Positions 1-64,000 of a stretch of DNA of 64,000 nucleotides are shown here, piece by piece. The translations under genes were made by a program, and so were the position numbers. The number at the start of each line of letters is the position of its first letter. Positions within the stretch are counted from its first letter, which is position 1. The DNA is taken from the sequence record OU509535.1; one strand, given 5' to 3'. The notes under the pieces are model-generated. The model ran no database searches, was not told where the DNA came from, and saw only the letters and a program-made list of their open reading frames with translations.

Positions 1-142
1 TTTTAACAAACAAGAAAGTACTGTCACCGTGCATCTGGGTAAAATCAGTATAAGTCCGTAAAGCACAATGCCAATACTCAACAATCTCCCTACTCCTTGA
101 GATCTACCAAAGTTGAGGGTGGTAGTACTTTCACCTTTTTAG

Positions 143-394
143 ATGAGAAACATTATGATTTTATTAATTATTACTACAGTACTGTTAGGATTATTCAATT
201 GCTGGATTTATTCAAGAATTGAAAAGAAAGAAGGATATTGCTTTCATAGTACAAAAGATGGTCAATTGGTTTCAATGTTTAGTTTAGAAACCCCATCAAT
301 TTGTAAATTCTTTATTCTTTTACAATTCATCCCGTTTGTTAATATTGTTTTCGCACTTTTATATTTCGTAGATATTCTTAATGGACATTTATAA
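143..394 (+). CDS. Small hypothetical membrane protein
   Basis: 83 aa ORF with two hydrophobic stretches; its stop overlaps the next start (TAATG). Confidence 0.6.
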   Translation: MRNIMILLIITTVLLGLFNCWIYSRIEKKEGYCFHSTKDGQLVSMFSLETPSICKFFILLQFIPFVNIVFALLYFVDILNGHL

Positions 395-1050
395 TGAATA
401 TTAAAACAACCGCAGATAAGTACTGGTTCATTATGAACCACCCAAAGTTTTTAAATAAAAATTTCATCACACCAAAAATTGAAATTGAACCACATAACGT
501 ATGTCCACAAACCAACAGAATTGAACCGTATGAATATTTGAATACAAAAGTCCAGTACTGGATTGAATTTTTTATCCCAGTACATGAGGATGGAAAGTGG
601 GATATTGCACATGATTACAAACATGATTGTGGTGGTGATACAATAGATGAAGCAATTGACTGCTTATACAATTCAGTACTAAATGAATATGGAAATTATA
701 CACAAGAAGAATTAGACAAAAAAGAAGATGAAGTATATGATTACAAAAAATTCAAGGTTGGTGGTGCAACAATGTCATATATTTTATCTAAAATTCATGA
801 AGACCTGTTTGAATACGCAAATGATAAAATTGTAACAGATGAAGAAGCAGAACCCTATAATAACAACACAGTTGGTTATTATGAAAACAAAATTAAAGAA
901 TTAAAAGGAACTTTAAATTCATTAATCGAATTCAAAAGAAATTCACCAAAAGAAATGCACAAAGTAATTGACAAAGACATAAAAAACGTAGAACATGACA
1001 TTTTTGCGAATGAAATGAGTATTAAATTTATGGTGGATTTGGATCTATGA
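394..1050 (+). CDS. Hypothetical protein
   Basis: 218 aa ORF, translationally coupled on both sides; no recognisable motif. Confidence 0.75.
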   Translation: MNIKTTADKYWFIMNHPKFLNKNFITPKIEIEPHNVCPQTNRIEPYEYLNTKVQYWIEFFIPVHEDGKWDIAHDYKHDCGGDTIDEAIDCLYNSVLNEYGNYTQEELDKKEDEVYDYKKFKVGGATMSYILSKIHEDLFEYANDKIVTDEEAEPYNNNTVGYYENKIKELKGTLNSLIEFKRNSPKEMHKVIDKDIKNVEHDIFANEMSIKFMVDLDL

Positions 1051-1415
1051 ATAAAGATCTTTCAAAATTAGTTGAAGACCTGCGGCAGTTGCCGAAAGTT
1101 GAACAAGTTGGGTCGTTTAAACGTTTTTTGGTTATTGCACGTGCATTAGATAAAAAGGGACGTGTACTTAGTACCAAAACTAATTCATACACACAAACAC
1201 ATCCAGTACAGAAGAAGTTTGCAGTTAAGGCTGGACGGTGTGAAGCTGTATGGCTCCATGCAGAAATTCGTTGTTTGTTAGCTGCAAGAAAAGATGTTCA
1301 TACATTACTAATTGCCAGAATTAACAAAGAAGGTCTTCCTGTTCCCGCAAAGCCATGTTCTGTTTGTGAACTGGCTATAAAAGAATATGGTGTAAAAAGG
1401 GTGATTTATACATGA
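1047..1415 (+). CDS. Cytidine/dCMP deaminase-like zinc protein
   Basis: HAE (WLHAEIRC) and PCxxC (KPCSVC) zinc-binding motifs of the CDA superfamily. Confidence 0.85.
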   Translation: MNKDLSKLVEDLRQLPKVEQVGSFKRFLVIARALDKKGRVLSTKTNSYTQTHPVQKKFAVKAGRCEAVWLHAEIRCLLAARKDVHTLLIARINKEGLPVPAKPCSVCELAIKEYGVKRVIYT

Positions 1416-1585
1416 AAAATATTTTTAAAAAAGAATATGATGGTGAAAGCCTTTGTGATATTCAACGAGATGTTGTTGAAGCATTCAGTACAGTATTCAA
1501 TCCAGAAATGATTGATATTCCAGTCGATGAATATGGATTCCAAGAAGGTACATTTGTTGTAAGTATTAAATGGAAGCCAGAATAA
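1412..1585 (+). CDS. Small hypothetical protein (57 aa, MKNIFKKEYDGESLCDIQ...)
   Basis: Translated by hand; ATGA overlap with the upstream stop and TAATG overlap with the next ORF. Confidence 0.6.
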   Translation: MKNIFKKEYDGESLCDIQRDVVEAFSTVFNPEMIDIPVDEYGFQEGTFVVSIKWKPE

Positions 1586-1713
1586 TGCGTGATCTTATTA
1601 TGTTCTTTTCTGCAATCATAGGACTATGTACTTATTATTTTTCCAATCATTATATTATAGCTATGGTATTTGCAATTATATATATTGCACTTTACAGTAC
1701 TGACGACGAATAA
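1585..1713 (+). CDS. Small hydrophobic protein (42 aa, MRDLIMFFSAIIGLC...)
   Basis: Translated by hand; coupled start; ends just before a terminator. Confidence 0.5.
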   Translation: MRDLIMFFSAIIGLCTYYFSNHYIIAMVFAIIYIALYSTDDE

Positions 1714-1735
1714 AAGCACCCCAGTGGTGCTTTTT
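1712..1735 (+). terminator. Rho-independent terminator
   Basis: AAAAGCACC-CCAGT-GGTGCTTTTT hairpin with U tract. Confidence 0.8.
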
Positions 1736-1770
1736 GTATTTGTACAAAATATAATCTAAGTGACTTTTTA

Positions 1771-1812
1771 TTGATTTAAATCAAGAATAAAATCACCTTT
1801 TAGTGATATAAT
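1771..1812 (+). promoter_or_regulatory. Class II FNR-type promoter of the nrdD operon
   Basis: Perfect TTGAT-TTAA-ATCAA (1771-1784) and extended -10 TGaTATAAT (1804-1812); box centre lies at -41.5 from the predicted +1 (about 1819). Confidence 0.8.
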
Positions 1813-1867
1813 ATGTTACGTAGCATTTAAATAAATCTACCACATAATAAAAAATCAAGGAAGAAAA

Positions 1868-3673
1868 ATGAATTCAAATAAATTATATGAAGATATTGAA
1901 AATTTTATTAATAATACAAATAAAGATATTACTACTGAAAATGCTAATAAAGATGCCAAAGTAGTTAATACACATAGAGATTTATTTGCTGGTATCCTTT
2001 CTAAACATTACGCCCAAGATACTATCCCAGAAGAATTTATTAAATGGCACAATGATGGTTATGGACACTGCCACGATTTAGATTACTGGATCTCACCATT
2101 AACAAATTGCTGCCTTATTAATTATCCAGATATGCTTAGAAATGGTTTTAAAATTGGTAGTGCTAACATTGAAGAACCAAAAAGTTTTTCTGTGGCTTGT
2201 ACGGTACTAACACAGATTGTGCAAGCGGTTGCAAGTTCACAATATGGTGGACAATCATTAGCTCACATTGACAAATATTTAGAACCATATGTTCAAATGT
2301 CATGGAATAAACTATTAGAAAAACAAAAGAAATATAATTTAAGTACCGAATTTATTGAAGACGAATTAAGAAAAGAAGTATATGATGGGTGTCAAACATT
2401 TTTATATCAATTAAACAGTACTGTGTCCGTGTCAGGCCAAACCCCTTTCATATCTATTAGTTTAGGTTTAAGTACTACGAAATTTGGACGTTTAATTACT
2501 GAACAATATTTAAAAGTTCATGAAAAAGGTTTAGGTAAAGATGGTATTACTCCAGTATTTCCGAAAGTTATTTTCTTTTTAGAAGATGGTATTAATGCTA
2601 ATAGTACTGATCCAAATTATGATTTAAAACAACAAGCATTACATTGTAGTTCTAAGAGAATTTATCCTGATTTCGTTAGTGTTACATTGAATAAAGAAAT
2701 CACAGGTAGTACTACTGAAGCTGTTACTCCAATGAGTTGTCGTTCATTCCTTTCCAAATGGATAAATGAAGATGGCGAAGAGCAATATAATGGCCGCTGC
2801 AATTTAGGGGTGGCATCGATCAACCTACCGTTAATTGCTCTTGAAAGTACGTCAGACGACGTTTTCTTTGACAAGTTACACCATCACATGGACATGGCAT
2901 ATCGCTTCTTATCGCTCCGTGTAGAGCGTTTAAAAGACACAAAAGCCCGACAGAATCCAGTACTGTACATGTACGGAGCCTTAGCTCGTTTAGATCCAGA
3001 TGAGACTATTGAGCAATTATTTTACAATGGAAGAAGTTCCATTAGTATTGGGTATGTTGGTTTATCTGAATGTTCTGAAATTCTTAAAGGAAAAATAGAC
3101 AAAGATTTTGGATTAAAAGTACTGAAATATATGCAAATGAAATGTAATCAATATAAAGAAGAAACTAATATCGCATATAGTTTATATGGAACACCAGCCG
3201 AAAGTTTGTGTTATAAATTTGCAAAAATTATTAATGAGAAATACCCCTCTGTATTGAATAGAGATTACATTAGTAATTCATTCCATTATCCAGTTCATTA
3301 TGATATTTCAATTTTCGATAAATTTGAATATGAAAGTTTATTTGGAAATATCAGTTCAGGTGGCAATATTAGTTATGTTGAAACCCCAAACCTTTCTAAT
3401 AATTTAAAAGCATTAGAAACAATAGTTGATTATGCTAGTACGAAAGTACAATATTTCGGCATAAATCAACCAGTGGATCACTGCTATAAATGTGGTCATG
3501 ATGGTCAGTTCAACGTAGATAAAAATGGATATAGTTGCCCGCATTGTGGTAATAATGATGAAAGTACTATATCAGTTATTAGACGTGTTTCAGGTTATCT
3601 TGGTGCACCAAATAGTCGCCCATTTAATAAGGGAAAACAAGCCGAAGTGATCGAAAGAATTCGTCATATGTAA
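1868..3673 (+). CDS. nrdD: Anaerobic (class III) ribonucleotide reductase large subunit
   Basis: 601 aa; TNCCL, PMSCRSF and GRCNLGV motifs, CxxC...CxxC zinc site, and the glycyl-radical motif RRVSGYL; no ATP cone, as in T4 NrdD. Confidence 0.97.
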   Translation: MNSNKLYEDIENFINNTNKDITTENANKDAKVVNTHRDLFAGILSKHYAQDTIPEEFIKWHNDGYGHCHDLDYWISPLTNCCLINYPDMLRNGFKIGSANIEEPKSFSVACTVLTQIVQAVASSQYGGQSLAHIDKYLEPYVQMSWNKLLEKQKKYNLSTEFIEDELRKEVYDGCQTFLYQLNSTVSVSGQTPFISISLGLSTTKFGRLITEQYLKVHEKGLGKDGITPVFPKVIFFLEDGINANSTDPNYDLKQQALHCSSKRIYPDFVSVTLNKEITGSTTEAVTPMSCRSFLSKWINEDGEEQYNGRCNLGVASINLPLIALESTSDDVFFDKLHHHMDMAYRFLSLRVERLKDTKARQNPVLYMYGALARLDPDETIEQLFYNGRSSISIGYVGLSECSEILKGKIDKDFGLKVLKYMQMKCNQYKEETNIAYSLYGTPAESLCYKFAKIINEKYPSVLNRDYISNSFHYPVHYDISIFDKFEYESLFGNISSGGNISYVETPNLSNNLKALETIVDYASTKVQYFGINQPVDHCYKCGHDGQFNVDKNGYSCPHCGNNDESTISVIRRVSGYLGAPNSRPFNKGKQAEVIERIRHM

Positions 3674-3746
3674 TCTATATAAAAACGACTAAATGAATAG
3701 TGATAATGTAGAATATAAATGAATTATCAAAAATAAGGAGTCAATT

Positions 3747-4109
3747 ATGACAATTAAAGCAAAACAAATTTTATCAGGCGAACATACTGGAACAATCTTT
3801 TTACACGATGATGAATATGCACGTATTTTAGTATCAAAAACATTTTCAGAAGATGATGAAGTATTATTCAGTACTTTTGAACATGAAGAAATGCGTGAAG
3901 TTGATATTCAAGAACAACCCAAAATTGAAGGCGGTCATCATTTAAATGTAAATGTATTATCACGTTCTCAATTAGAAGAAGCACAGAAATTTCCTGAAAA
4001 ATATCCTCAACTTACTATTCGTGTTTCTGGATATGCAGTTCGTTTTAATTCTCTTACGAAAGAGCAACAAAATGATGTAATTTCACGAACTTTCACTACT
4101 AAGTTCTAA
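3747..4109 (+). CDS. grcA: Autonomous glycyl radical cofactor (GrcA/YfiD-like)
   Basis: C-terminal half [10 protein letters not shown]...[35 protein letters not shown] is diagnostic. Confidence 0.93.
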
Positions 4110-4113
4110 TGTA

Positions 4114-4461
4114 ATGTTTTTTGAATATAATGATGAAAATATATATCCAATTGTGGTTAATAAGTACAAAGAACCATATGATGTATATATTGGAAGAGGT
4201 TCAAAATGGGGGAATCCATTCACTCACATAAAAAATCGTGATACGAAAGCTGAGTTTATTGTTAATACCAGAGAAGAATCTATTTCAAAATATAGAGAAT
4301 GGATATTTGATAAAATTGAAAACGGTGAAATTACCATTGATGAGTTACTAGAATTATCTGGTAAAAAATTAGGATGTTTTTGTAAGCCTAAATCATGTCA
4401 TGGTGATGTTCTTGTGGAAATAGTGAGTGCATTATTAGATGAATTATCAAACAATAATTAA
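4114..4461 (+). CDS. DUF4326-like protein
   Basis: YDVYIGRGSKWGNPF and LGCFCKPKSCHGDVL motifs. Confidence 0.8.
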   Translation: MFFEYNDENIYPIVVNKYKEPYDVYIGRGSKWGNPFTHIKNRDTKAEFIVNTREESISKYREWIFDKIENGEITIDELLELSGKKLGCFCKPKSCHGDVLVEIVSALLDELSNNN

Positions 4462-4909
4462 AGATGACTTAATAAATGGGGAGGGAGTTAGATGCTCCCT
4501 TTTTGTTTCGGGATGTTCAATGGGTTGTAAAAATTGCTACAATGAAAAAGCATGGGATTATAGAAGCGGTACTGAATTCGGTACTGAACAAGTTGAACTT
4601 ATACTAAACGAATTATCTAAATCTTATATATCAGGATTATCATTACTTGGTGGTGATCCACTTGCTCCAAAAAATTTCAGTACTATACTGGATTTGTGTA
4701 AGATTGTTAAAGAAAAATACCCAGACAAAAACATATGGTGTTGGTCTGGGTACACATTAGAAGAGATACAAAACAATCATGCAAAAGAAATATTACAGTA
4801 CTGTGATGTATTGGTTGATGGTAAATTCATTAATGAATTAAAAGATTTGTCGTTACCATACAGAGGTTCAATAAATCAACGTATATTAAGAAAAAATATA
4901 AATTATTAA
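4439..4909 (+). CDS. nrdG: Anaerobic RNR activase (radical SAM)
   Basis: NGEGVRCSLFVSGC, CxxxCxxC (CSMGCKNC), LLGGDPL, PYRGSINQR. Confidence 0.96.
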   Translation: MNYQTIIKDDLINGEGVRCSLFVSGCSMGCKNCYNEKAWDYRSGTEFGTEQVELILNELSKSYISGLSLLGGDPLAPKNFSTILDLCKIVKEKYPDKNIWCWSGYTLEEIQNNHAKEILQYCDVLVDGKFINELKDLSLPYRGSINQRILRKNINY

Positions 4910-4915
4910 AAAAAT

Positions 4916-4943
4916 AAAAAAGCCTCTTTTAAGAGGCTTTTTT
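4916..4943. terminator. Bidirectional terminator between convergent genes
   Basis: AAAAAAGCCTCTT-TT-AAGAGGCTTTTTT. Confidence 0.85.
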
Positions 4944-4944
4944 A

Positions 4945-7900
4945 TTATATAGATGTTGTGTTATTCAAATCATCAAATTTTTTTGATAAAATATCATATC
5001 TTCTACGTTGGTACGCAGCTTCAACAATTAAACATTCTTCCATTCTAAGCATATAAATTTCGCCAGCTTCTACAGCTTCCGTTAATTGAACCCCATTTTC
5101 ATCATATGTTTCACTTACTGCGGGCCATGATTCATAAGTTATTAATCCATATTTTGTCCAATCAAGACCAGCAGAAATTAATGCATCTCTAACTTGTTGT
5201 GCAATATACCCAACATGCCATCTAGCATCATCTTCACCTTTTAATGCAACAGCAGCTTTCATTTTCCACATTTGAAAATTAACAGAACCCCATGCGTCTA
5301 ACAATTCATCAGGTATATTTTGTATATCAATTTTATGAGTTTCATCTGATACAACAGTAACCGCGTTTTGTGTATATATATTTTGTATAGTTGAAGATGA
5401 TGAACCAATGTCATATGTAGCTGTTGTAGTTGGAATTATATTACCAGTAACTCTTAAATTTGTTCCTGCATTTATTGTTAATGAAGAAGATCCAGAACAA
5501 CTTATTGTACCAGTTACAGTTGTACCACCGTTATAATAAAATTCCAAACTTTTGCTACCAGCTCCTGAATTATATCCTAAACCAATTGAATATGTTGGTC
5601 TAAAAGCGTTAGCATAAACTACCCCAGAAAATGTTCCAGCAGTTGCTGTTAAATTATTAATAGAATAATCATTATAAAATGAATATGGAGAAATAGATGC
5701 CTGATTTAGAACTAACACATCACCTATATTACCCAAAACACCATATGAAACATATTGATACGAAATGGTACCGGATGAAGTTGTTAATCGTTTAAATAAT
5801 TCATATAATCCAGTAGCTGAAGTACTTGAACCCGATTCAATATATATTGGTATACCAACAGCTAAAAATTTAGCATTATCGGCTGATACAGTAAAAGTAG
5901 TCAAATTATTTGTTGTATCTACCGAGTTTATAGTAGCCAATATTGACACTTTATAACTAGATGGCAATGACATACCATCAGTAACCATTTTCGAAGTATT
6001 AGTATATCCTGATGTAATAGTAGTACTTATAACGTTATTAGATTTAGATTTATATGTGTGTACCCATGGGGCAATTAAATCACCACGTTTGAACAAACCA
6101 CCACCAATACTTCCATCTACTGCGGTATATTGTGATACCGTAGTTAAAATACTTGAAGCTGGGGATTCTGGTATATATGATTGTACACCATTTGGAAATA
6201 ATGGTATACCACCAGTATATGCTTCAACTGCTTTTATTATTATTGGGGTTGTTGATGGAACTGTAATAACTATACTACCATTTCTAGCATAACTGTAAAT
6301 CCCATTCCAAGCACTTAATCTTTTCTGAGAAAGCATCATCATTTTATAACCATTTCCAAAATTAACTACTTTTTCCGCAAATGATTTAACTAAAGCTGCA
6401 TCAGTATTTTGAGAACTTTCTTGTGATGCTGACGTTTGCCATGCAACTGCATTTTTAGTATCAAAATTATCAGATAAATCTTTATACCATATACACACCA
6501 TCGAACGAATCGACGGATTTCTCCAAGGAATGAAAACAGTACCAGAATTTATTTGTAATCCATAGGGATTAAACATTTCATTGGCATATGGACGATCACG
6601 TAAAGATTCCCAATCGGTATCAGTAGTCATGAAAATATTATATGTACCATATTTGAAATCATATCCACCATGATAAAATGCTCCTAAATCTCTAGCTGGT
6701 GCACCAATAGCATATGTTGTTTGTCCATTTGGTGTATCGTAATGAGTTGTACTACTTGGATATAGATAATCACCATTGTCAGAAATAGTTCCAAAACATT
6801 CTTTTTCAAATGTCACTTGGTTATAATCTAAAAAGTTATCTTTATATGTATTCATACAGTTCAATTGTAAACCTTGGAACCTACTTGCTTTACCATTGAA
6901 ACCCCATCTAGAGATGGTTATGAAATTATAATCCCATTCATTATATGTAGCATCGAAGTTATGTTTTTGAACAGTACTATAAACAGTACTTTTATTCGCA
7001 TTATATACCCACGATGCTGCTGGACCAATATAACAACCACTAGCATCGAACGACGTTCCTGTTATTACTGCTATATAATCTGGAATATCTCCAGAAATAT
7101 TATTTGCATGTCTCCAAGCTAAATTATTTATTATTTCACAGTTAGTTGCTGAAGACCAATCACATGCATTTCTGAATATTCCACGGCGACCTGATTCAAA
7201 TTTACATCCATGTAAATTAACACGGTTAAAATTACCAAATCGTGATGTTACACCTTCTGACACCATATAATCTAAAACATATTGATAATCTTTAATATTA
7301 TCATCAAAATTTAAATTATAGTCAGTTTTAAAAACAGTTTCAGTTATCCCAGATGGCATAAAAACACCACACCAGTTTCCATTTTTAGCTCTAGTACCAT
7401 ACATACTAACGCCTTCTGGATTTAGACATAATATTAATGCACCTGCTGAACTATCATCCGACATAGTTGTTATCGAATGATCTCCAATAAAAATACCACC
7501 ATATACAGCAGTATCTTGTAAACTTACAGTGCCCCAATAACTTTGTTTATTAACTGCTAACCATTTTTCTTTAATTTCATCATATCCATGACACAATCCA
7601 GACAGACGCTTACCAGTAGCTTTATAGGTGTATGATTTGCCAGCATAAATCATAAATCTGGATGCACCGAAATGATAATCAACTCCAGTTTTCCATTTTA
7701 TATGTATTTTACCAATTCTATATCTATTTGCTGGTACTGTTATTTGTAAACGTTCTCCACCTGAATAGGTTGATTCGTTATTACTTCCATATATTGCTAA
7801 TGGTATTAAAGATGTAATTCCATTTATTACTTCACCAATACAAACGAAATCATCAGTTGTTGTATCAGTGGCTTTACTATAGGTATATGAAATAGCACCA

Positions 7901-8658
7901 TTTTGTAATGCATTTACTGATCCACTTGATATATCTAATTTATATTCATACCCATTAGCATTATAAATTAGTGCACTGGAAACAATATGCAATGATGCTA
8001 ATGAGGTATCAATATTTCCCGTTGCAATCCATTTTCCGTGACCGCCATCACCGCGAGAATAAAAACCATCGATTTCTATCATATCATAATTTATTGTTGC
8101 ATTTCGAAATTCAATACTTGATGGGAATTTCACTATTAAATTTTGAAAATTAAATAATTTCCAACCACCTGTCGTGAAATCTTCGTCATTTGAAATTATT
8201 TTTGGATATGTTCCGACATAAGTATAAATTGAAGATGTTTTTTCATTATATACTGCATCAGTCGATTGTGTTATGACAGTATTAACTGTAGCATAACCCA
8301 CCAAATTTAGTTCTGAACTATATTCTAAGATATTTTTTAATTGTTCGAAAAATTGATTTCGTAATGAATCTATTTCTATATTGTATTGATACTTTTTCAA
8401 TTCATATGTTGATTCTGACGTCATTAATTTCATTATATCATCTTGTATAACCCAAGAATCAATATTACCAATTTCACTACCAGTCATAATCCAAACTGTT
8501 TCTGTATTTTCATCGTATAAACCTTTTAGTGAACTTACATCAAGACCGTCTTCAATATATTTTACTTCTGAATGTTCACATCCTAATATACGTGCTATAC
8601 CTTGTTTATTAATTTCTTTAGAAACCGAACCTTTCGGTTGAATTAAATTATTTGCCAC
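4945..8658 (-). CDS. Tail fibre/tailspike RBP with C-terminal intramolecular chaperone (peptidase S74-like)
   Basis: Start moved to the GTG at 8658 (GAGG SD, VANNLIQPKGS); shared QPKGS N-terminal module; C-terminal VVSDETHK...WHVGYIAQ...MEEC chaperone. Confidence 0.85.
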   Translation of the reverse strand: MANNLIQPKGSVSKEINKQGIARILGCEHSEVKYIEDGLDVSSLKGLYDENTETVWIMTGSEIGNIDSWVIQDDIMKLMTSESTYELKKYQYNIEIDSLRNQFFEQLKNILEYSSELNLVGYATVNTVITQSTDAVYNEKTSSIYTYVGTYPKIISNDEDFTTGGWKLFNFQNLIVKFPSSIEFRNATINYDMIEIDGFYSRGDGGHGKWIATGNIDTSLASLHIVSSALIYNANGYEYKLDISSGSVNALQNGAISYTYSKATDTTTDDFVCIGEVINGITSLIPLAIYGSNNESTYSGGERLQITVPANRYRIGKIHIKWKTGVDYHFGASRFMIYAGKSYTYKATGKRLSGLCHGYDEIKEKWLAVNKQSYWGTVSLQDTAVYGGIFIGDHSITTMSDDSSAGALILCLNPEGVSMYGTRAKNGNWCGVFMPSGITETVFKTDYNLNFDDNIKDYQYVLDYMVSEGVTSRFGNFNRVNLHGCKFESGRRGIFRNACDWSSATNCEIINNLAWRHANNISGDIPDYIAVITGTSFDASGCYIGPAASWVYNANKSTVYSTVQKHNFDATYNEWDYNFITISRWGFNGKASRFQGLQLNCMNTYKDNFLDYNQVTFEKECFGTISDNGDYLYPSSTTHYDTPNGQTTYAIGAPARDLGAFYHGGYDFKYGTYNIFMTTDTDWESLRDRPYANEMFNPYGLQINSGTVFIPWRNPSIRSMVCIWYKDLSDNFDTKNAVAWQTSASQESSQNTDAALVKSFAEKVVNFGNGYKMMMLSQKRLSAWNGIYSYARNGSIVITVPSTTPIIIKAVEAYTGGIPLFPNGVQSYIPESPASSILTTVSQYTAVDGSIGGGLFKRGDLIAPWVHTYKSKSNNVISTTITSGYTNTSKMVTDGMSLPSSYKVSILATINSVDTTNNLTTFTVSADNAKFLAVGIPIYIESGSSTSATGLYELFKRLTTSSGTISYQYVSYGVLGNIGDVLVLNQASISPYSFYNDYSINNLTATAGTFSGVVYANAFRPTYSIGLGYNSGAGSKSLEFYYNGGTTVTGTISCSGSSSLTINAGTNLRVTGNIIPTTTATYDIGSSSSTIQNIYTQNAVTVVSDETHKIDIQNIPDELLDAWGSVNFQMWKMKAAVALKGEDDARWHVGYIAQQVRDALISAGLDWTKYGLITYESWPAVSETYDENGVQLTEAVEAGEIYMLRMEECLIVEAAYQRRRYDILSKKFDDLNNTTSI

Positions 8659-8700
8659 TATATTAACCCTCAAGTTTTATATATAAGAATATTTATAATT

Positions 8701-8726
8701 AAAAAGTCTATGGGCAGAGACTTTTT
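8701..8726. terminator. Terminator hairpin
   Basis: AAAAAGTCT-ATGGGCAG-AGACTTTTT. Confidence 0.65.
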
Positions 8727-8738
8727 ATTTTTAATTAT

Positions 8739-9056
8739 ATGAAGCATATATTATAACAATTTCTAATGTTGTTAAACTTGGTTAAAATAATAAAGAGAAA
8801 GTAGGTTGATGTTTCTGAATATGATGTAGGTGCTTCTGTAAGCAATGCTTACTGGAATAACACTCGTAGCGATGTAACTATTGATGAGTTAATTTAAGCT
8901 TCTAGTTAAGTTCTACTTCTTTCTGAAAAAGTAGCGGAGGCCAATCGTAATTGTTGAGCTGTTCTATCAAATGGAGAGAAGTCCAAAACTAAACGTAAGC
9001 CGAAAGAATCTAATCCAGTGTTTGCTGTAGACTTCGACGATGATATTCCGTTCTGA
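8739..9056 (+). pseudogene. Decayed ORF ending in an SSB-type C-terminal tip (DFDDDIPF)
   Basis: One frame from ATG 8739 to TGA 9054 is broken by five stops (8754, 8802, 8895, 8907, 8955) but ends PVFAVDFDDDIPF*. Confidence 0.6.
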
Positions 9057-9075
9057 TGCTAAAAAAGCACTAAAG

Positions 9076-9104
9076 AAAAAGGAACCCAACTGGGTTCCCT
9101 TTTT
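9076..9104. terminator. Bidirectional terminator
   Basis: AAAAAGGAACCC-AACT-GGGTTCCCTTTTT. Confidence 0.8.
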
Positions 9105-53372: not shown

Positions 53373-53396
53373 CTCTTTTCTTAAAAGGATAATTAT

Positions 53397-54023: not shown

Positions 54024-54118
54024 TTTTCTCATTTCTAACATCCCTCATTAATCCTCCAATAAATAATACTATACGAGAATAATCGAATAGAACCAAATTA
54101 TTTTTGGAGGATTTTTTT

Positions 54119-56785
54119 ATGGCAGATTTAATCAGCCCAGGAGTTGACGTACAGATTACTGATGAAAGTATTAGTACTGCATCCACTCCAGGAACTGTAC
54201 CCCTATTTGTTTTAGCAACTGCTCAAGATAAATTAGTACCTGGATCAACTTCAATTGCATCCGCTACAACTAAAGCGAATGCTAATACACTACAACTAGT
54301 AACATCACAGAAAAATGTACTTGATCTGTTTGGTACTCCAGTTTTTCAGGTTGACAGCACCGGAAGCGTAGTTCAGGGTGATGAACTAAATGAATATGGT
54401 TTACACTCAGTATATTCCTATATGGGAATTTCTAACCGTGCATATGTTGTACGTGCAGATCTCGATCTAGCACAACTATCACCAAGATCAACTGCTCCAA
54501 CTGGCCCAGTTTCTAACGGTACCCTTTGGTTAGATATGACTTCTTCTCAAGTGGAAGCCTATATTGCTAAAGTGGCAAACCCATCAAGTTTCCATGACTG
54601 GGAATTAAAAACAGTACATATGGTAACTGCTGAGGATGTTGATGATGTTGATACTACAGAATATAATATTGACGATTTGGTATTGCGTTTTAAACCAAGT
54701 AATGGTCAATTTTTAATGTATAAACTTGAAGTACAAGGTCTGACACAAACAAACACCATTCTTTCACCAATCAATAAAGTACCAACTGGTACTGGTATTG
54801 CCGAAGGTGATGTGTGGATCCGTGATGGTTATACTCAAAATGGTTCCAATTATTTTGGTACTCGTTTTGTAATTAAACGTTATATGTCACTTACTAGTGT
54901 GTGGACTGTAGTACCTACCTATACTGGTAACAACTTCGCTGAAATCGAAGCTAAGAGTGGCGTTTTCAATGCAAGTTATATTGCATCTCGATTTGATTTC
55001 GATAGTAAGAGTTTTTCTTTCTATCTACAGAGTGAAAAAACAGTAACACAAAACAGCCCTGCTGTTCCAGTTGGTGAACTAACTCCAACAACTGCTACTC
55101 AAAATTCATATTTAACTTTCTCTTATCTGAATAAAGTTATAAAACTGGTAGCAGTTAAACAAGGTGAAACAATTAATACAGCAACCATAATTAGTAATAT
55201 TTCTTCAAGTAAAGATATGGCTAACGCTGGTTTTGGTTTTGTACGTAATTCAGATGGTGCTCTGGTTGTTAGTAACAAAAATGGCTATAGTTTCAAGACT
55301 ACTCAAACTGGTGATGTACTATTCAGTAATACTGAATTTGCTAAACTATCAGTTGTTGAAAGTTCAAACTATTCTATTCTGAATCCTAATAATTTCAAAG
55401 GCAACACTGATACCCCAACCAGTATTGCTAAAGATGGTACTTATTGGTATGATTTTTCCAATAGTGATAACTTGACTGTTACTATGTATACCGCTGATTA
55501 TGCAACTGATTCATGGAAACTTGTTGACAGTTCTAATCAATATGTACAAGTCGATGAACCCACTGCTGATCGTGAATTCTGGGTACTACCACTTTCACAA
55601 GGCGTTGATGGTTATGTTTTCTATCGTAACATCAACGGTTCATGGGTTAAACTTGATACTACGGATCAAAGTACCCTTAACGGCATGATTTTCGAAGATT
55701 TTAACTTCCCTGATACTGTACCAGCACCAGAATTATATCAAAACTCTATGCTCGCTATCGACATGGGTAATACTGAAGGTGTTGTAAAGAAAATGGAAGA
55801 TGGTGAATGGCACGTAGTTAGTGGTACTAACCTAAGTGGTAGTGGTCTTTTCGGTCGTGCCGCACAACGTCAAATTGTTGTACAAGCACTTCAAGCAGTA
55901 CTGGTAGGTAATGAAGATATTCGTTCTGAATGGATTAGCTATAACCTAATCTGTGTTCCTGGATATGTTGAAACACTGGATGAATGTGTTACTCTTAACG
56001 TAGATCGCAAAGAAACAGCATTCATTATTACTGATGTTCCAGCACGATTAGACCCAACTGGTAATGGTAATGAAGTACAAGCATGGGCCAGCAATGCAAA
56101 TAATGCGGCCAGTAATGGTGACATTGGTCGTACAACCACTTATGACTATGCTGCGGAATATATGGGATGGTGCCTGAGTACTAACGTTGACGGTACCGAA
56201 ATCGCAGTTCCAGGTAGTACTGTAGCAATGCGTACTATTGCTTATAGTGATAGTATCAGTCATGTTTGGAACCCACCAGCAGGTACTTCAAACGGTGTTG
56301 TTACCAATGCAAGTTCTGTAGGTTTTATTAACTCAGAAGGTGAATATCAATCTGTTCAGTACTCTGAAGGACAACGTGATGTGATGTACTCAAACAATAT
56401 TAACCCTATTGCTATGCGTCCAACTCGTGGTCTTCTAATTTGGGGTCAAAAAACACTAAGTGCTGACAGTACTTCTGCATTAAGTCGTGTTAACGTTGCT
56501 CGTCTGATGTGTTATATTCGCAAACAAGTTGCTATCATTGCTGAACCATTCCTATTCCGACTGAATACACCAAGTACTCGTCAGGAATTCACTGGTGTGA
56601 TGAATGCATTCTTCAGTGAATTAGTGCAAAATAATGCACTATATGATTTTACTGTAGTGTGTGATGAGAGTAATAACACCTCCGCCCGTATCGACCGTAA
56701 CGAACTGTGGTGTGATATTGCAGTACAACCAGTGCGAGCAATTGAATTCATCTATATTCCAATTCGTATTGAAAACACTCAATAA
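54119..56785 (+). CDS. Tail sheath protein (gp18-like)
   Basis: LISPGVDV N-terminus; C-terminal WNPPAG..NG, NNINPI, WGQKTL, RVNVARL, VVCDESNNT..IDRNE; TAAATA at 54060. Confidence 0.93.
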   Translation: MADLISPGVDVQITDESISTASTPGTVPLFVLATAQDKLVPGSTSIASATTKANANTLQLVTSQKNVLDLFGTPVFQVDSTGSVVQGDELNEYGLHSVYSYMGISNRAYVVRADLDLAQLSPRSTAPTGPVSNGTLWLDMTSSQVEAYIAKVANPSSFHDWELKTVHMVTAEDVDDVDTTEYNIDDLVLRFKPSNGQFLMYKLEVQGLTQTNTILSPINKVPTGTGIAEGDVWIRDGYTQNGSNYFGTRFVIKRYMSLTSVWTVVPTYTGNNFAEIEAKSGVFNASYIASRFDFDSKSFSFYLQSEKTVTQNSPAVPVGELTPTTATQNSYLTFSYLNKVIKLVAVKQGETINTATIISNISSSKDMANAGFGFVRNSDGALVVSNKNGYSFKTTQTGDVLFSNTEFAKLSVVESSNYSILNPNNFKGNTDTPTSIAKDGTYWYDFSNSDNLTVTMYTADYATDSWKLVDSSNQYVQVDEPTADREFWVLPLSQGVDGYVFYRNINGSWVKLDTTDQSTLNGMIFEDFNFPDTVPAPELYQNSMLAIDMGNTEGVVKKMEDGEWHVVSGTNLSGSGLFGRAAQRQIVVQALQAVLVGNEDIRSEWISYNLICVPGYVETLDECVTLNVDRKETAFIITDVPARLDPTGNGNEVQAWASNANNAASNGDIGRTTTYDYAAEYMGWCLSTNVDGTEIAVPGSTVAMRTIAYSDSISHVWNPPAGTSNGVVTNASSVGFINSEGEYQSVQYSEGQRDVMYSNNINPIAMRPTRGLLIWGQKTLSADSTSALSRVNVARLMCYIRKQVAIIAEPFLFRLNTPSTRQEFTGVMNAFFSELVQNNALYDFTVVCDESNNTSARIDRNELWCDIAVQPVRAIEFIYIPIRIENTQ

Positions 56786-56789
56786 TACA

Positions 56790-56817
56790 AAAAAGGGAAC
56801 TTTCGAGTTCCCTTTTT
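56790..56817 (+). terminator. Terminator with UUCG loop
   Basis: AAAAGGGAACT-TTCG-AGTTCCCTTTTT. Confidence 0.88.
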
Positions 56818-56904
56818 ATTTTATAAGTTAGTACAGGTTGTGGTTATTTCTCCAATAAATAAATATAAAGAGAATTATATATTCCTTAGTGGAGAAATTA
56901 TAAT

Positions 56905-57588
56905 ATGGCGACAATGCTTGATAAGTATGGCGTACCCATTAGTGGTGGCGGCAATATGATGAAAAGCCCTAAACCAAAATATCGATACAGAGTTATCTTT
57001 TTTGGTTTTGGTGCAAACGACGATGGTAACATGATTACCCTTGATACCAATACCGTCGGTGCAGTTAGTGTATCACATGAAAATGTAACTGTTCATAGTT
57101 ATAACTCAAGTGCACATTACAAAGGGAAATATTCATGGAACACAATTGAAGTTGCATTCCGTGATTCTGTTGGTAATGACAGTGCTAAAGCAGTTTATAA
57201 CCAAATGCGTAAAGAGTTTAACTATTATACTCAGGAATCACGCACTTCTGATTCACAATTTAAATTCGAAATGTGGATTCAGGAACTGGATGGTAGTAAC
57301 TCATCTGAACGTACCAATTTATTTCAGGGTACTCTGAGTACTTGGGTTTGTCAGGGTTGTTTTATTACTGAAACCAACTTTGGTGAATGGGATTATTCCA
57401 GTTCTGATCCACAAGTTATTACCATGACAGTTCAACCAGATGGTTGTGCTAAACTTGGGCCTACTGGTCTTCCATTCGGTGATGAAGTTTCCGGTAATGG
57501 TACTCCAGAAGGTGCTTCTTCTATTAGTGGGGCACAAACAGTCATTAATGAAACATCTATAACTGATAGTAACTTCTATACTTCATAA
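56905..57588 (+). CDS. Tail tube protein 1 (gp19-like)
   Basis: Follows the sheath; YRYRVIF, GKYSWNTIEVAFRD, W.CQGCFI.E.NFGEWDYS. Confidence 0.8.
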   Translation: MATMLDKYGVPISGGGNMMKSPKPKYRYRVIFFGFGANDDGNMITLDTNTVGAVSVSHENVTVHSYNSSAHYKGKYSWNTIEVAFRDSVGNDSAKAVYNQMRKEFNYYTQESRTSDSQFKFEMWIQELDGSNSSERTNLFQGTLSTWVCQGCFITETNFGEWDYSSSDPQVITMTVQPDGCAKLGPTGLPFGDEVSGNGTPEGASSISGAQTVINETSITDSNFYTS

Positions 57589-57636
57589 TTTATTTGATAA
57601 ATAATAAAGTATGTTTCATATAACTTCCTTGTAAAC

Positions 57637-57672
57637 AAAAGCTCCGATGCTAAAAACGTCGGAGCTTTTTTT
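57637..57672 (+). terminator. Terminator
   Basis: AAAAGCTCCGAT-GCTAAAAAC-GTCGGAGCTTTTT. Confidence 0.82.
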
Positions 57673-57728
57673 GTTTATTATATTCGCTAAATAATAGATA
57701 AAACCTAATATAATACAGAGGTTAAAGT

Positions 57729-58502
57729 ATGGCTGATATGCTATCCAAATACGGTGTACCTATGCCGAGTGGTAAAAACAAAACTATGCTACAACCTAAA
57801 GCACAATATAAATTCAGAGTTATTGTATACAATTTCGGTACAGAAATTGATGAACGAGATCATATTGCTTTAGATGTTGACAAAGTTGACAGACCAAGTA
57901 TTTCATTTTCAACACATAAATTATATCAGTTCACGACTAACACATCCTATATCGGTAGTTATGACTGGAAAGAAATTAAATTAACAATCAGGGATTCGAT
58001 TGGTAATGACAGTGCTAAAGCAGTATCAAGACAATTACAAAAACAAAAAGATTTTCAACGAAGAATTACTTCTAAATCAGAACAGGATTATGCTGGATAT
58101 AAATTCGGTATGATTATTCAGATGCTAAATGGGCGAAACTACGATGATAGTCTAGAATCATTGGGTAGGAATACTGCCACCAGTGTAGCTAGTGCAGTTA
58201 CAAATAATACTGGACTGGTTAATGCAATTGATAAATTTATCGGTGGTTCTACTTATAACACATCAGGTGTAATGGAATATTTTGTATGCACTGGGTGTAT
58301 TATAACTGATATAAGTTATGACTCACTTGATTATGGGTCAAGTTCACCAGTTACTATGCAACTTACTATTAAACCAGATAGCTGTCTACAATTCGATGAT
58401 ATAGAAGAAATGTATAAAGTTAGAATTAGTTCACTTCTCCCAGATAGTGTTAATCAGGGTCTTGATATTTTAGATCGTGTACTCGGTAGTACTGGAATTT
58501 AA
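57729..58502 (+). CDS. Tail tube protein 2 (paralog)
   Basis: Shares KYGVP, FRVI.., RDS(V/I)GNDSAKAV and C.GC.I...DY.SS with tube 1. Confidence 0.78.
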   Translation: MADMLSKYGVPMPSGKNKTMLQPKAQYKFRVIVYNFGTEIDERDHIALDVDKVDRPSISFSTHKLYQFTTNTSYIGSYDWKEIKLTIRDSIGNDSAKAVSRQLQKQKDFQRRITSKSEQDYAGYKFGMIIQMLNGRNYDDSLESLGRNTATSVASAVTNNTGLVNAIDKFIGGSTYNTSGVMEYFVCTGCIITDISYDSLDYGSSSPVTMQLTIKPDSCLQFDDIEEMYKVRISSLLPDSVNQGLDILDRVLGSTGI

Positions 58503-58511
58503 GGAGAATAT

Positions 58512-60671
<2,160 letters not shown>

Positions 60672-60708
60672 ATTAAACGACAACTTTATATTAATTTTGG
60701 AGTTATTA

Positions 60709-61257
60709 ATGATTAATTTACAAAAAATTCTCACCGATAATAAGCCTGTATATGAATACAGGATTAAATTTGCAACTGAACCGAGTACTGAAGACTTGAG
60801 TAAAATTACTCAACGACTTACAGATCGTTATGATGCATTTGAAATTGGTGCAGTTAAGAAAACTATTTTTATGGATAAACCACTTGATTTTTATGATATG
60901 GATTGTGGTGAAATCTGGATGTTTGATTTTAAATGTAATCGTGGAGTACAAACCAATGTTCTTACTTATGAAATTGGTAATCTTCTGAGTATGAGTGAAG
61001 CACTAATTCGAGTGCGTAGTAAAGATTCACCAACTCAAATTGAAATGTCAATTGGTGAAGATGACATTGATTTTGATACAGTAGAAGTAATTGGCGTTGA
61101 TGTAGGTGCGGCTGTGGATAGTACTGGAATTGCTGGTCAGGAACGTGCAGATCAAGCAGTGAAAGATTCACTTAAAGCATCTGAAGAAGTAAGGGGAGCA
61201 CACAAAAAAGATAAGTACACTCACTATATGAGTGCGGCTTTTGGTAATAAGGAATAA
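60709..61257 (+). CDS. Hypothetical (probable virion) protein
   Basis: TAAATA at 60665 and GGAG SD; start MINLQK. Confidence 0.7.
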   Translation: MINLQKILTDNKPVYEYRIKFATEPSTEDLSKITQRLTDRYDAFEIGAVKKTIFMDKPLDFYDMDCGEIWMFDFKCNRGVQTNVLTYEIGNLLSMSEALIRVRSKDSPTQIEMSIGEDDIDFDTVEVIGVDVGAAVDSTGIAGQERADQAVKDSLKASEEVRGAHKKDKYTHYMSAAFGNKE

Positions 61258-61261
61258 TAAT

Positions 61262-61807
61262 ATGAGTTTATTTGATGAAGTAATTACACATAATACCGAA
61301 CTTCAAGAAGACCGTCCATATAGCCGCACACAGGGTGCTATTGATGCTGCTAAAGGTAAAGTCAAAGGTATGTTTGGATCGGGTCAGGTAGAGCAAGGTG
61401 CACAAGAAGTTGGTGCAGAAGCTAACAAGTACTGGAACGAATTTAAACGCTATATTGGTAGAAAATATGGTAAATCCCAAAGTACGGTTCCATATAGTGA
61501 TGTTGAAGAGTTCTTTAAAGGGAATAATCTTGATACTAAGTTTCTTGGTAACAACAATCGTCGTTCATTTACACCCAAAGATGTAGGTAATGCACTATTA
61601 CAGGCAGTTCGTCAGGAAATGAATGATTATAAAAAACAGGAAGAACCAAAACAAGAACAACCAAAACAACAGGATGACACTACTACACAAGAACGTCCTT
61701 CTACTGGTTCAGATCAGGGACAACCGGGTTCGTCTGATTCTCTAAATAATGAAATACAGAGACTTACACCAGCAGAACGCAGTCAATTACTTTCCCTGCT
61801 GGCATAA
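61262..61807 (+). CDS. Hypothetical (probable virion) protein
   Basis: AAGGA SD; start MSLFDEV; Gln/Pro-rich linker. Confidence 0.72.
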   Translation: MSLFDEVITHNTELQEDRPYSRTQGAIDAAKGKVKGMFGSGQVEQGAQEVGAEANKYWNEFKRYIGRKYGKSQSTVPYSDVEEFFKGNNLDTKFLGNNNRRSFTPKDVGNALLQAVRQEMNDYKKQEEPKQEQPKQQDDTTTQERPSTGSDQGQPGSSDSLNNEIQRLTPAERSQLLSLLA

Positions 61808-61818
61808 GAGGTGATTGA

Positions 61819-62766
61819 ATGTTAAATGAATTCAAAAGTGGTGTGACCGTACCAAATGGGTATGTTTACACCAGTAAAACAGGTGCACGTTATGTTTTTC
61901 TGGAGTGTATGTGGTTTAATGAAAGTAATATGATGCTTGTTGATCCTCAAAAATATGGTAATATGTATTTGAGTGCAGTTGCACAGATCAATGAATACAA
62001 TTCATCTTCTAATGAATACAAAATTGGTAATACATATAACAAAGATAACAAAACTTGTGTTTTTCTTGGTGAATCACGATTTATTACTGAAAATGGCACT
62101 ATCATCAATGAAGACGATGAAAATACCAACCAGGTACCAAATGGTATCAGAATCACATCAAAAAATGGTAATGTTTACCAGAAAAAAGATGGTCAGTGGT
62201 TTAACATTGAAACCAAAAAAGCACTGAATAGTTCAGCGGCACAGGGTGCAGAACGTAGTGCACAAAAAATGATTCAAATTCATAATTCAAATGAAGATAA
62301 CATAAAAATTGGTAGTACTGTTACTTCTAAATCAAACAAAACCTATACTTATCTTGGTGGTGATCGTTTTATGGATGCTGGTGGTAGATTATTACCAAAA
62401 AGTACTGCTCAAGCTTTAATTCAAAAACACAAAGATGAAAAAAGTTCTGGGAAAGAAGAAGATGAACAAAAAACTGGTTCATCCGATGATACCAGTACTA
62501 ATACCACTGACAACACCAATACCACTGATAATACAAATAGTTCAGATGATACTTCTGGTGGTAATGGTGATACAGATAATCAAAGTTCTGATAATCCAAT
62601 GCAAGAACTTGCTGATAAAATTAATGCATCTCCATATGCACGTAAAATTAAAGTTCTATTAACTCGTGCTGATAAAGTATCTTTGTTAGCCGCTGATATT
62701 TTTCTTAGTGGGAAACGAGAAGAAGTTACACAATTTATCAAATCATTAAATAATAATAATGAATAA
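61819..62766 (+). CDS. Hypothetical protein with internal repeats
   Basis: Repeated TSK.G/N..Y.(Y/F)...(W/R)F units; TNTTDN tandem linker at 62497-62550. Confidence 0.72.
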   Translation: MLNEFKSGVTVPNGYVYTSKTGARYVFLECMWFNESNMMLVDPQKYGNMYLSAVAQINEYNSSSNEYKIGNTYNKDNKTCVFLGESRFITENGTIINEDDENTNQVPNGIRITSKNGNVYQKKDGQWFNIETKKALNSSAAQGAERSAQKMIQIHNSNEDNIKIGSTVTSKSNKTYTYLGGDRFMDAGGRLLPKSTAQALIQKHKDEKSSGKEEDEQKTGSSDDTSTNTTDNTNTTDNTNSSDDTSGGNGDTDNQSSDNPMQELADKINASPYARKIKVLLTRADKVSLLAADIFLSGKREEVTQFIKSLNNNNE

Positions 62767-62784
62767 TTAAAAGGATTTATTGAA

Positions 62785-63699
62785 ATGTCTAAAAAAATTA
62801 ACGAAGCACAAGTTAAGATTGATATCATGAACTTAAATAGTTCAGATCTATCAACACTTGCTCGAATGATGGAACTTGCTGGACAAGCCGAACAAGGTGC
62901 AGTTCCAAGTACATATAGTTCTATTGGTGTACCAGGTAGTATTGCAGGTGCAGTCGATTCTATGGGTAATACTGAACCATCTGAAGTTGAAGTAGGTTAT
63001 GATGTTGATTCTGAACCAGATGTAAGTTCTTCTCTGGAAGTGGGTTCTGAGCCTGATGTTGATCCACTACAAAGTTCAATTGAAGAACTTGGCGGTATGA
63101 CTGATTTTGGTGCACAAGATGATGAACTAACTGATATCGACGTGGTAGAATCTGAAGAAATTGAAGACGAAGATGATATGATTGAAGAAGAGTTAAAACG
63201 TATGACTCAGTTATCTGGTATTGTCACTGAAGATGAAGATGTTGAAGTCGATTCCGATGATGATGATGACAAAGATGAATCAGATGATGATGTAGATCTC
63301 GATGAATCTCGCATTATTCCAGATCTAAGTCTAGAAGAAGATACCAGTGATGTTACTGAGTATGGTCCTTTTGATTCTGAACAAGATGCTATCCGTGATG
63401 CAAAATGGAAGACTAATGGAGAACTGGGTGATAACTTCAACGTAGATCAAAAAGAAGATGGTCATTTCTACTGGAGTCGTGTGATGCAAGAACAAGCGTT
63501 TAGTACTGAAGCAGATCCTGAATTAGTAGATACAGATGGTATTCAATATTCACGTCACCGTATGAAACCAAAATTTAATGGTGCTGCTCTCGGTGATAAC
63601 CCACTTCGTGAAGAAGAGCAAGAAGACGAAGAAACCGTTGATGATATCTTTGAAAGTCTACAAAAACGCTACACTGCTTTTGTTGGAGGTAAAAAATAA
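62785..63699 (+). CDS. Highly acidic hypothetical protein (possible head scaffold/core protein)
   Basis: 304 aa; long D/E tracts; lies in the late structural region. Confidence 0.7.
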   Translation: MSKKINEAQVKIDIMNLNSSDLSTLARMMELAGQAEQGAVPSTYSSIGVPGSIAGAVDSMGNTEPSEVEVGYDVDSEPDVSSSLEVGSEPDVDPLQSSIEELGGMTDFGAQDDELTDIDVVESEEIEDEDDMIEEELKRMTQLSGIVTEDEDVEVDSDDDDDKDESDDDVDLDESRIIPDLSLEEDTSDVTEYGPFDSEQDAIRDAKWKTNGELGDNFNVDQKEDGHFYWSRVMQEQAFSTEADPELVDTDGIQYSRHRMKPKFNGAALGDNPLREEEQEDEETVDDIFESLQKRYTAFVGGKK

Positions 63700-64000
63700 T
63701 GTTTGATTATCGTAAACTAATGGAAGCACTTGATGCTATTGAAAATGGTGAAGACGTGCAACAGGACAGTGCTCCAGCAGCGAAAGAGGATGTGGTGGGG
63801 CATCTCAAGGATATCACCAATTCAATTATCGACATTCTTGATAAACTACAAAGTGGTGATGCCGATATGAATGAGGTTTGTAAAGATTTGCAAAAAGCTA
63901 GTGACATTCTGTCAGCATTGGCATATAATGATTCTACTGATTCAGATGAAGAATCTGATACAACTGATGATACCAGTACTGATGAAGTAACAGAAGATGT
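63699..64000 (+). CDS. Acidic hypothetical protein, truncated by the window end
   Basis: GGAGG SD and TAATG coupling; open to the end of the window (MFDYRKLMEALDAIENG...). Confidence 0.7.
   Translation, partial: MFDYRKLMEALDAIENGEDVQQDSAPAAKEDVVGHLKDITNSIIDILDKLQSGDADMNEVCKDLQKASDILSALAYNDSTDSDEESDTTDDTSTDEVTED

Follow-up and report, generated by a model that had tools for sequence, protein, structure and literature searches.

A GTAC-centred palindrome is strongly over-represented in a clade of jumbo phages of Enterobacterales

Why does the hexamer AGTACT recur so often in the DNA of a Klebsiella jumbo phage, and what keeps it there? The question is raised by a 64,000-nucleotide stretch of sequence record OU509535.1 (hereafter, the window), which matches positions 124001-188000 of this unannotated 347,546-bp Klebsiella pneumoniae phage assembly identically. 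The window is 96-98% identical to the jumbo myoviruses RaK2, K64-1, Muenster and KP13-7 (genus Alcyoneusvirus), and its genes were named by homology to the RaK2 annotation. A preliminary description of this DNA had counted about 150 copies of AGTACT by eye where about 20 were expected, likened the word to HIP1, the iterated palindrome of cyanobacteria, and proposed that a DNA-level process creates or keeps it, either methylation-directed repair by a phage methyltransferase or binding by a phage protein. No mention of an AGTACT excess in these phages was found in the literature searched.

The excess is real. By program, the window contains 151 copies of AGTACT (17 in the first 4.9 kb, as had been claimed), compared with 21.8 predicted from base composition and 15.9 ± 4.1 (maximum 25) in dinucleotide-preserving shuffles, and both the earlier count and the earlier expectation were therefore borne out. 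An order-3 Markov model, which keeps tetramer frequencies and so controls for GTAC, predicted 60.5 copies. The sole null model to come near the observed number was of order 4 (127.7 predicted), in which the enriched pentamers are already included. Across the whole RaK2 genome, AGTACT occurs 937 times against 116.5 expected, an excess of approximately 8-fold.

Within the 63 coding sequences (CDSs) called in the window, 134 copies of AGTACT were present, compared with 39.5 ± 5.5 (maximum 57) when synonymous codons were shuffled with the protein and the codon usage of each gene kept, and 24.5 ± 5.0 when codon order was shuffled. All three reading phases contributed, each at 3 to 7 times its synonymous-shuffle mean: AGT-ACT was observed 81 times (mean 26.8), xxA-GTA-CTx 38 times (10.6) and xAG-TAC-Txx 15 times (2.2). 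The three copies that had been offered as examples of these phases do lie in them when read in the called frames (Table 1). Ser-Thr pairs were written as AGT-ACT in 81 of 196 cases, where 24.5 were expected, and the dipeptides themselves were in excess (Ser-Thr, 196 vs 128; Val-Leu, 134 vs 92), which supports a DNA-level bias having raised their counts. AGTACT was also twice as dense in non-coding DNA (5.0/kb) as in coding DNA (2.5/kb). The enrichment thus outlasts the controls for codon usage, amino-acid usage and GTAC frequency that the preliminary description had named as able to abolish it.

AGTACT forms the centre of a palindrome that extends further, (TT)CAGTACTG(AA), and the true unit is CAGTACTG or longer rather than the hexamer. 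C before and G after AGTACT are strongly preferred, and G before and C after are avoided, with G directly before the hexamer being the rarest base (3-8%). In RaK2, CAGTACTG occurs 247 times against 2.9-3.0 expected (83-85 times), and the 12-mer TTCAGTACTGAA occurs 34 times, or 866 times expectation; in the window, the 33 copies of CAGTACTG represent 55 times expectation. The strongest hexamers in RaK2 are CAGTAC and GTACTG (11.5-11.7 times expectation), and GTAC itself is at 2.5 times. One outer mismatch in CAGTACTG lowers the enrichment to 7-18 times and two outer mismatches to 2.7-4.3 times, while a mismatch in the GTAC core lowers it to 1-3.6 times. The profile is therefore graded and multiplicative per half-site, a fall-off that suggests a binding-energy profile.

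The excess is a trait of the phage lineage and not of the host. Both an AGTACT excess and a complete lack of GCGC were found in CMSTMSU (Asteriusvirus), GAP32 (Mimasvirus), the Erwinia phages Kaldavass and Hallingskeid (AGTACT at 9-10 times expectation) and 7/7 IMG/VR contigs with a tail sheath of at least 66% identity to that of the window. None of 41 contigs with a tail-sheath identity of 48% or less showed the AGTACT excess, nor did Stenotrophomonas phage RAS14. A host-driven bias was ruled out by T4-like phages that share these hosts: RB49 has no AGTACT in 40 kb (68291-108776; 12.8 expected), and a Klebsiella Slopekvirus has five (12.4 expected). GCGC is absent from the window (48 expected), from each 346-kb Alcyoneusvirus genome and from every sampled clade member. 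All relatives outside the clade do contain it, and a 50-kb sample of E. coli DNA has 8.4/kb. GCGC absence and AGTACT excess coincide exactly at one node of the tree (7/7 contigs vs 0/41). Sixteen palindromic hexamers have no copies in RaK2, and CTTAAG has one where 116 are expected.

Other words also deviate from expectation in these genomes. CTTAAG is absent from the window (22 expected), and CTAG is at 0.31 times expectation there and at 0.29 times in RaK2, where CCAG/CTGG reach 2.3-2.5 times. Very-short-patch repair is the usual explanation in enterobacteria for high CCAG/CTGG with low CTAG. By a provisional count, RaK2 has 15 copies of the E. coli Chi octamer on its main coding strand and three on the other (<1 expected per strand), and the window has 2 + 2.

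DNA that entered the lineage recently carries far fewer copies. The three blocks of the window without alignment to RaK2, which are mainly receptor-binding modules, have 0.94 AGTACT/kb compared with 3.12/kb in the backbone, i.e. the excess is approximately 3 times weaker there. In agreement, the near-absence of the word from two tailspike bodies that had been described earlier was recovered (one copy in 9300-11250 and none in 14350-16750). The density of the word also separates phage DNA from other DNA: the phages carry 2.4-2.7 copies/kb, whereas the 50-kb E. coli sample has 0.14/kb and the imported modules ∼0.9/kb, making AGTACT 17-19 times denser in the phage than in the E. coli sample.

The evolution of the sites within the genus was followed by aligning OU509535, RaK2 and K64-1 over 313 kb (8311 polarised changes). 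Ancestral AGTACT was lost in 87 of 884 cases (9.8%), whereas hexamers overall had a loss rate of 12.0% and words matched in composition one of 12.6%. The stronger the copy, the less often its core was lost: the rate was 6.6% in full octamers, 10.1% where one C/G flank was present and 12.2% where neither was, with a background of 12%. Gains were more frequent than expected. At third positions of in-frame AGT-ACT, corrected for local divergence, 21 synonymous gains were observed against 10.5 expected (2.0 times; P = 0.003), and among single changes in one-off neighbours, 41 of 275 (14.9%) completed AGTACT, compared with 5.6% expected (P = 1e-8). For one-off neighbours of the octamer, 19.8% of single changes completed CAGTACTG (4.2% expected). 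Changes that created AGTACT showed no non-synonymous excess (31% vs 40.5%). Alignments of the three genomes show the synonymous convergence towards AGTACT for which a test had been proposed, and reveal a weak net bias towards the word, which consists mainly of extra gains and some protection of the best copies, with free turnover of the rest.

A small set of copies occupies fixed positions in promoters. AGTACT pairs with a spacing of exactly 20 bp occur 19-20 times per genome in three Alcyoneusvirus genomes (neighbouring spacings, 1-5), and no other regular short-range spacing was found. With two exceptions, each pair forms part of an early promoter of the sigma-70 type (AGTACT-TGACA ... AGTACTG-TATAAT), in which AGTACT is fused to the −35 hexamer and AGTACTG to the −10 hexamer. 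Approximately 19 of them lie outside the window, among the small early genes at 226-244 kb of RaK2, and the window itself contains no promoter of this type. The same layout is present in other clade members with 38-41% GC. Promoter copies are seldom lost within the genus (1/35). Near the paired promoters of RaK2, a 1.5-kb non-coding gap contains a 50-bp tandem duplication that carries an array of AGTACT with spacings of 40, 10, 20 and 20 bp, in phase with the DNA helix. Only ∼38 of the 937 RaK2 copies hold a fixed position relative to −35 and −10 hexamers, and promoters were rejected as the whole explanation of the excess, since they account for only ∼40-60 of the 937.

Several further observations concern such promoters or the early region. 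One paired-AGTACT promoter each was present in unrelated environmental viral contigs (GC 41-43%, GCGC present, AGTACT at ∼1.6-3 times expectation), and an Rfam scan of these contigs gave no match. A non-coding stretch of RaK2 contains an AT-rich dyad repeat of 22-30 nt in 5-6 copies (families D1 and I1), and some of these are followed directly by CAGTACTG; the repeat may resemble the box of the iron regulator Fur. Among proteins of the RaK2 early region, ORF332 weakly matches the H-NS N-terminal domain, below threshold (E = 1.7e-4), and ORF354 matches a ParE-like toxin domain (E = 1.9e-10).

What process could produce this pattern? The preliminary proposal of a DNA-level process favouring AGTACT within the lineage is supported by the null-model controls, the non-coding density, the sparse imported modules and the gains. 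Of the candidates then put forward, the binding site of a phage protein fits best, with the amendment that the unit bound would be CAGTACTG or longer. We therefore prefer, tentatively and at somewhat less than even chances, to read the word as the recognition palindrome of a symmetric DNA-binding factor, kept dense by a weak bias in its favour. In this scheme, (TT)CAGTACTG(AA) would be the site of a sequence-specific double-stranded-DNA factor that binds as a symmetric dimer, is intrinsic to the RaK2/121Q/GAP32 clade and is probably phage-encoded. At the ∼20 early promoters per genome, the paired copies 20 bp apart have an operator-like layout, by which the factor could control early transcription. 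The other ∼900 copies are spread evenly over the coding and non-coding backbone and are not kept site by site; their density would be maintained by a weak bias in which new copies arise or persist at ∼2x the neutral rate and the cores of the best copies are lost at about half the background rate. Such a bias on gains and losses would leave resident phage DNA with 2.5-3 copies/kb, in comparison with the host sample (∼0.14) and the imported tailspike modules (∼0.9). The role we favour is that genome-wide binding marks or organises phage DNA as distinct from host DNA, and that binding at early promoters shuts them off. The excess, the form of the motif, its distribution in the clade, the turnover of sites, the bias on gains and the promoter layout are shown; the existence, the identity and the genome-wide role of the factor we infer, on the basis of the dyad symmetry, the additive half-site profile, the helically phased arrays, the promoter pairs and the strength-dependent conservation.

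A number of results weigh against a binding factor. When 10 proteins of the window and 30 of the early region were scanned against Pfam, no clear DNA-binding domain emerged, the sub-threshold match of ORF332 aside. Placement is random-like (coefficient of variation of the spacing, 1.06), with a flat distribution along genes and no preferred position within them. Between genera, where the window was compared with GAP32 over 30 orthologues (56% amino-acid identity), only 5/56 and 5/50 aligned AGTACT sites were common to both, and the residues encoded under AGTACT were less conserved (12-24% identical) than dipeptides in general (35%). Within the genus, AGTACT at synonymous third positions was unprotected, with 25 losses against 26.1 expected (0.96 times neutral), where a symmetric weak-selection model predicts ∼14. 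Furthermore, turnover at the outer C/G positions brings the loss of CAGTACTG, taken as an 8-mer, up to the background rate.

All of these points are also expected under neutral molecular drive, in which a step in replication, repair, recombination or packaging converts near-matches, or favours DNA that bears the word, and most dispersed copies have no function. We consider drive possible but doubtful. The synonymous bias acts on gains only, synonymous gains and losses are about equal (about 21 vs 25), positions turn over completely between genera with sites in variable residues, placement is random-like, and the sparseness of new modules is as expected if sites accumulate with time in the lineage. 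On the other hand, gains arise through many base changes (A>T, C>T and G>T at outer positions; C>T and G>A inside) rather than a single mismatch type, neighbouring words are not depleted, and octamer cores and promoter copies are conserved above background. On the tip branches, losses of the whole hexamer exceed gains (87 vs 58), which fits mutation pressure opposed by selection better than drive at equilibrium. The unprotected synonymous sites speak for drive; weak selection is favoured by the conserved strong copies and by the surplus of losses on the tip branches. Drive would, in any case, still require a factor that reads the same palindrome.

The combination of a multiplied word and a missing one may also constitute a self/non-self code based on word content instead of base modification, although we regard this as unlikely. 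Here, the CAGTACTG family (∼940 copies) would mark phage DNA to a phage-encoded reader, and a GCGC-directed phage nuclease would destroy host DNA; such a nuclease would spare the phage, since GCGC is wholly absent from its DNA.

It is less likely again that the word is the working site of a replication or topology enzyme acting on both strands, such as a type II topoisomerase cleaving with a GTAC stagger or a primase start site, enriched so that such sites stay common in an AT-rich genome of 346 kb. The clade does encode a gp39/gp52-type topoisomerase and a gp61-type primase, the GTAC core is indispensable and itself enriched, and the two top hexamers are strand-specific halves of the palindrome whose contributions are independent. 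However, GTAC already occurs by chance approximately every 345 bp, leaving little need to enrich it, and a primase reads 3-5 bases of single-stranded DNA rather than a 12-bp dyad. Moreover, an enzyme site leaves the pairs at fixed positions in early promoters unaccounted for, and the excess is missing from distant relatives that have these enzymes too.

Methylation, the other candidate of the preliminary description, was left unsupported, and we give it little credence. It holds that a phage methyltransferase marks AGTACT or GTAC and that mark-directed repair, of the HIP1 or very-short-patch type, regenerates the site. RaK2 does encode three modification enzymes, namely a C5 methyltransferase (ORF194), a small Dam-family enzyme without a solved relative and a Mom homologue. 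The closest solved relatives of ORF194 are the catalytic domains of eukaryotic DNMT3A/3B, matched over the full length (E = 2e-22), and it is nearer to these than to bacterial type II enzymes. In agreement, CpG methylation was seen by bisulfite by the authors of the RaK2 report, and neither the enzyme nor this methylation fits AGTACT, because the word has no CpG. Kaldavass and Hallingskeid carry the excess, yet the published comparison of their native and amplified DNA by nanopore reported only GATC, CCWGG and TGCAT as modified. Judged on the C5 enzyme and the published methylomes of these two clade members, AGTACT appears not to be a methylation target, and Pfam and PDB searches of the three modification enzymes likewise provided no link to it. 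A very-short-patch mechanism predicts depleted one-step neighbours of AGTACT, but none were depleted (AGTATT/AATACT are at 1.15 times expectation), and no Vsr-type gene is annotated in RaK2.

Even a little less credible is that a host protein of the Enterobacterales reads the word and that the phage uses this protein or soaks it up. The nearest case is the nucleoid-occlusion factor SlmA, whose site GTGAGTACTCAC spans 12 bp with the same AGTACT core, and all hosts of the clade are Enterobacterales; the dyad repeats that may resemble a Fur box would point to another regulator of the host. At positions 1 and 3, SlmA requires G and a purine, whereas the phage consensus has T and C, and G is the rarest base just before AGTACT. 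Flanks of the purine..pyrimidine type number 89 against 530 of the pyrimidine..purine type, and the 346 kb of RaK2 include one exact SlmA-pattern site. Identity with the SlmA site was therefore rejected, as the phage word lacks the SlmA half-site (G, T, A and G at positions 1, 2, 4 and 5; purine at 3). Lastly, there is next to no chance that the excess simply follows from the use of codons and amino acids and from base composition. AGT, ACT and GTA are frequent codons and the AGT-ACT phase is seen most often, but the synonymous shuffles, the enrichment of all three phases, the writing of Ser-Thr pairs, the doubled non-coding density and distant relatives of similar GC without an excess refute this reading.

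The positions of the sites and of the surrounding features are collected in Table 1. A large cluster of tail-fibre and tailspike genes spans 4.9-31.5 kb of the window, and equivalents of RaK2 ORF001-050 follow at 31.7-64 kb. These include a nucleotidyltransferase, a spanin, a thymidine kinase, a lysozyme, a CCA-adding enzyme, a homing endonuclease, the tail sheath and the tail tube. Of four AGTACT copies that had been called intergenic, those at 17940, 39248 and 39346 are so, and the copy at 38459 is doubtful, as it lies within a minus-strand open reading frame (ORF) annotated in RaK2 as ORF014w. A scan recovered the terminator hairpin described earlier with AGTACT in both arms, which represents one event rather than two because the word is a palindrome.

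Table 1. Positions of AGTACT-related features and genomic blocks in the window
Feature	Position	Strand	Remarks
Whole window	1..64000		151 AGTACT (2.36/kb), 33 of them full octamer CAGTACTG
nrdD/nrdG region, conserved backbone	1..4888		17 AGTACT, 3.5/kb
Tail-fibre/tailspike (receptor-binding protein) cluster	4889..23306		No alignment to RaK2; 16 AGTACT, 0.87/kb
Mostly conserved backbone: last tail-fibre genes and RaK2 ORF001-050 equivalents	23307..64000		118 AGTACT, 2.9/kb
Shorter block inside 23307..64000	25012..26733		No alignment to RaK2
Shorter block inside 23307..64000	27293..29461		No alignment to RaK2
Tailspike ORF	9273..11699	-	GC 0.427; 1 AGTACT (0.41/kb)
Tailspike ORF	14319..17699	-	GC 0.418; 1 AGTACT, in N-terminal part
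AGT-ACT (Ser-Thr) phase example	2417..2422	+	In nrdD-like gene 1868-3670
xxA-GTA-CTx (Val-Leu) phase example	2959..2964	+	
xAG-TAC-Txx phase example	554..559	+	
Intergenic AGTACT	17940..17945		Between two tail-fibre genes
Two intergenic AGTACT	39248..39351		Starts 39248 and 39346; upstream of DUF5856 gene 39465-39911
Terminator-like hairpin	51315..51350	+	16 pairs then T run; AGTACT in each arm (51318, 51342)
Full 12-bp palindrome TTCAGTACTGAA	40198..40209		
Full 12-bp palindrome TTCAGTACTGAA	46756..46767		
Full 12-bp palindrome TTCAGTACTGAA	52223..52234		
CAGTACTG, start positions	177, 553, 1695, 2416, 2958, 4796, 13257, 20316, 23413, 23455, 23779, 24677, 27176, 29107, 30760, 33190, 34176, 36614, 38122, 40200, 40282, 41766, 42094, 42566, 43135, 44556, 46758, 49784, 52225, 53152, 55896, 59819, 63974		

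Taken together, most palindromes are purged from the DNA of an entire clade of 350-kb phages that infect Klebsiella, E. coli, Cronobacter and Erwinia, yet one is multiplied 8 to 85 times, which is enough to shift the clade's proteins. AGTACT is a type II restriction site, and phages are the textbook avoiders of palindromes. The rest of the phage genome fits such avoidance, while AGTACT is opposite in sign, and RB49 avoids the very word that the jumbo clade multiplies. High AGTACT with zero GCGC thus provides a simple signature of clade members and of freshly imported modules.

At the promoters, the closest likeness is to phage and bacterial promoters in which paired operators lie on either side of the −35 element. 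In both cases, two dyad-symmetric sites two helical turns apart overlap RNA polymerase contacts; unlike paired operators, the phage word is also spread through coding DNA. These features point to a DNA-reading factor and a design of early promoter, neither of them described before, in phages under consideration for Klebsiella therapy. The DNA uptake sequences of Haemophilus and Neisseria occur at approximately one or more copies per kb, mark own DNA, lie in all frames and shape peptides; their copies turn over, are often found in terminator hairpins and have been proposed to spread by gain-biased drive. The phage word is alike in setting own DNA apart by its density, in occupying all frames and shaping peptides, in its presence in a terminator hairpin and in its turnover. 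Uptake sequences, however, are not palindromes and are read by the uptake machinery of competent bacteria, and we know of no DNA-uptake-like step for a lytic phage. The word also differs from Chi and uptake sequences, which are defined by a known machine and by dependence on orientation, in that a palindrome has no orientation. The SlmA sites of E. coli are dispersed 12-bp palindromes bound by a helix-turn-helix dimer (Tonthat et al. 2011, PMC3020112), with ∼50 sites per chromosome and none in promoters (PMC3020112). They share the AGTACT core with the phage word but differ from it at two required flank positions and in number (∼50 per chromosome vs ∼940 in 346 kb).

The likeness to HIP1 suggested at the outset holds in form. 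HIP1 (GCGATCGC) of cyanobacteria is an octamer palindrome in 15-300 times excess (Xu, Lawrence and Durand 2018, PMC5861425), and CAGTACTG is likewise a palindromic octamer, over-represented ∼85 times where at least 15 times would qualify as HIP1-like, which lies within and between ORFs and in all reading phases. Neither word has a settled function. Unlike HIP1, the phage word is viral, AT-rich and without a GATC or CG core, no methyltransferase link was found for it, and it has a fixed place in early promoters as well. Conservation between genomes is seen for HIP1 sites, whereas only ∼10% of the phage sites are common between genera and octamer cores and promoter copies appear to be the only ones conserved above background. 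The jumbo phages therefore offer a second, far smaller and more tractable system, with many genomes available, for the 25-year-old question posed by HIP1 of whether such a word is maintained by selection or by drive.

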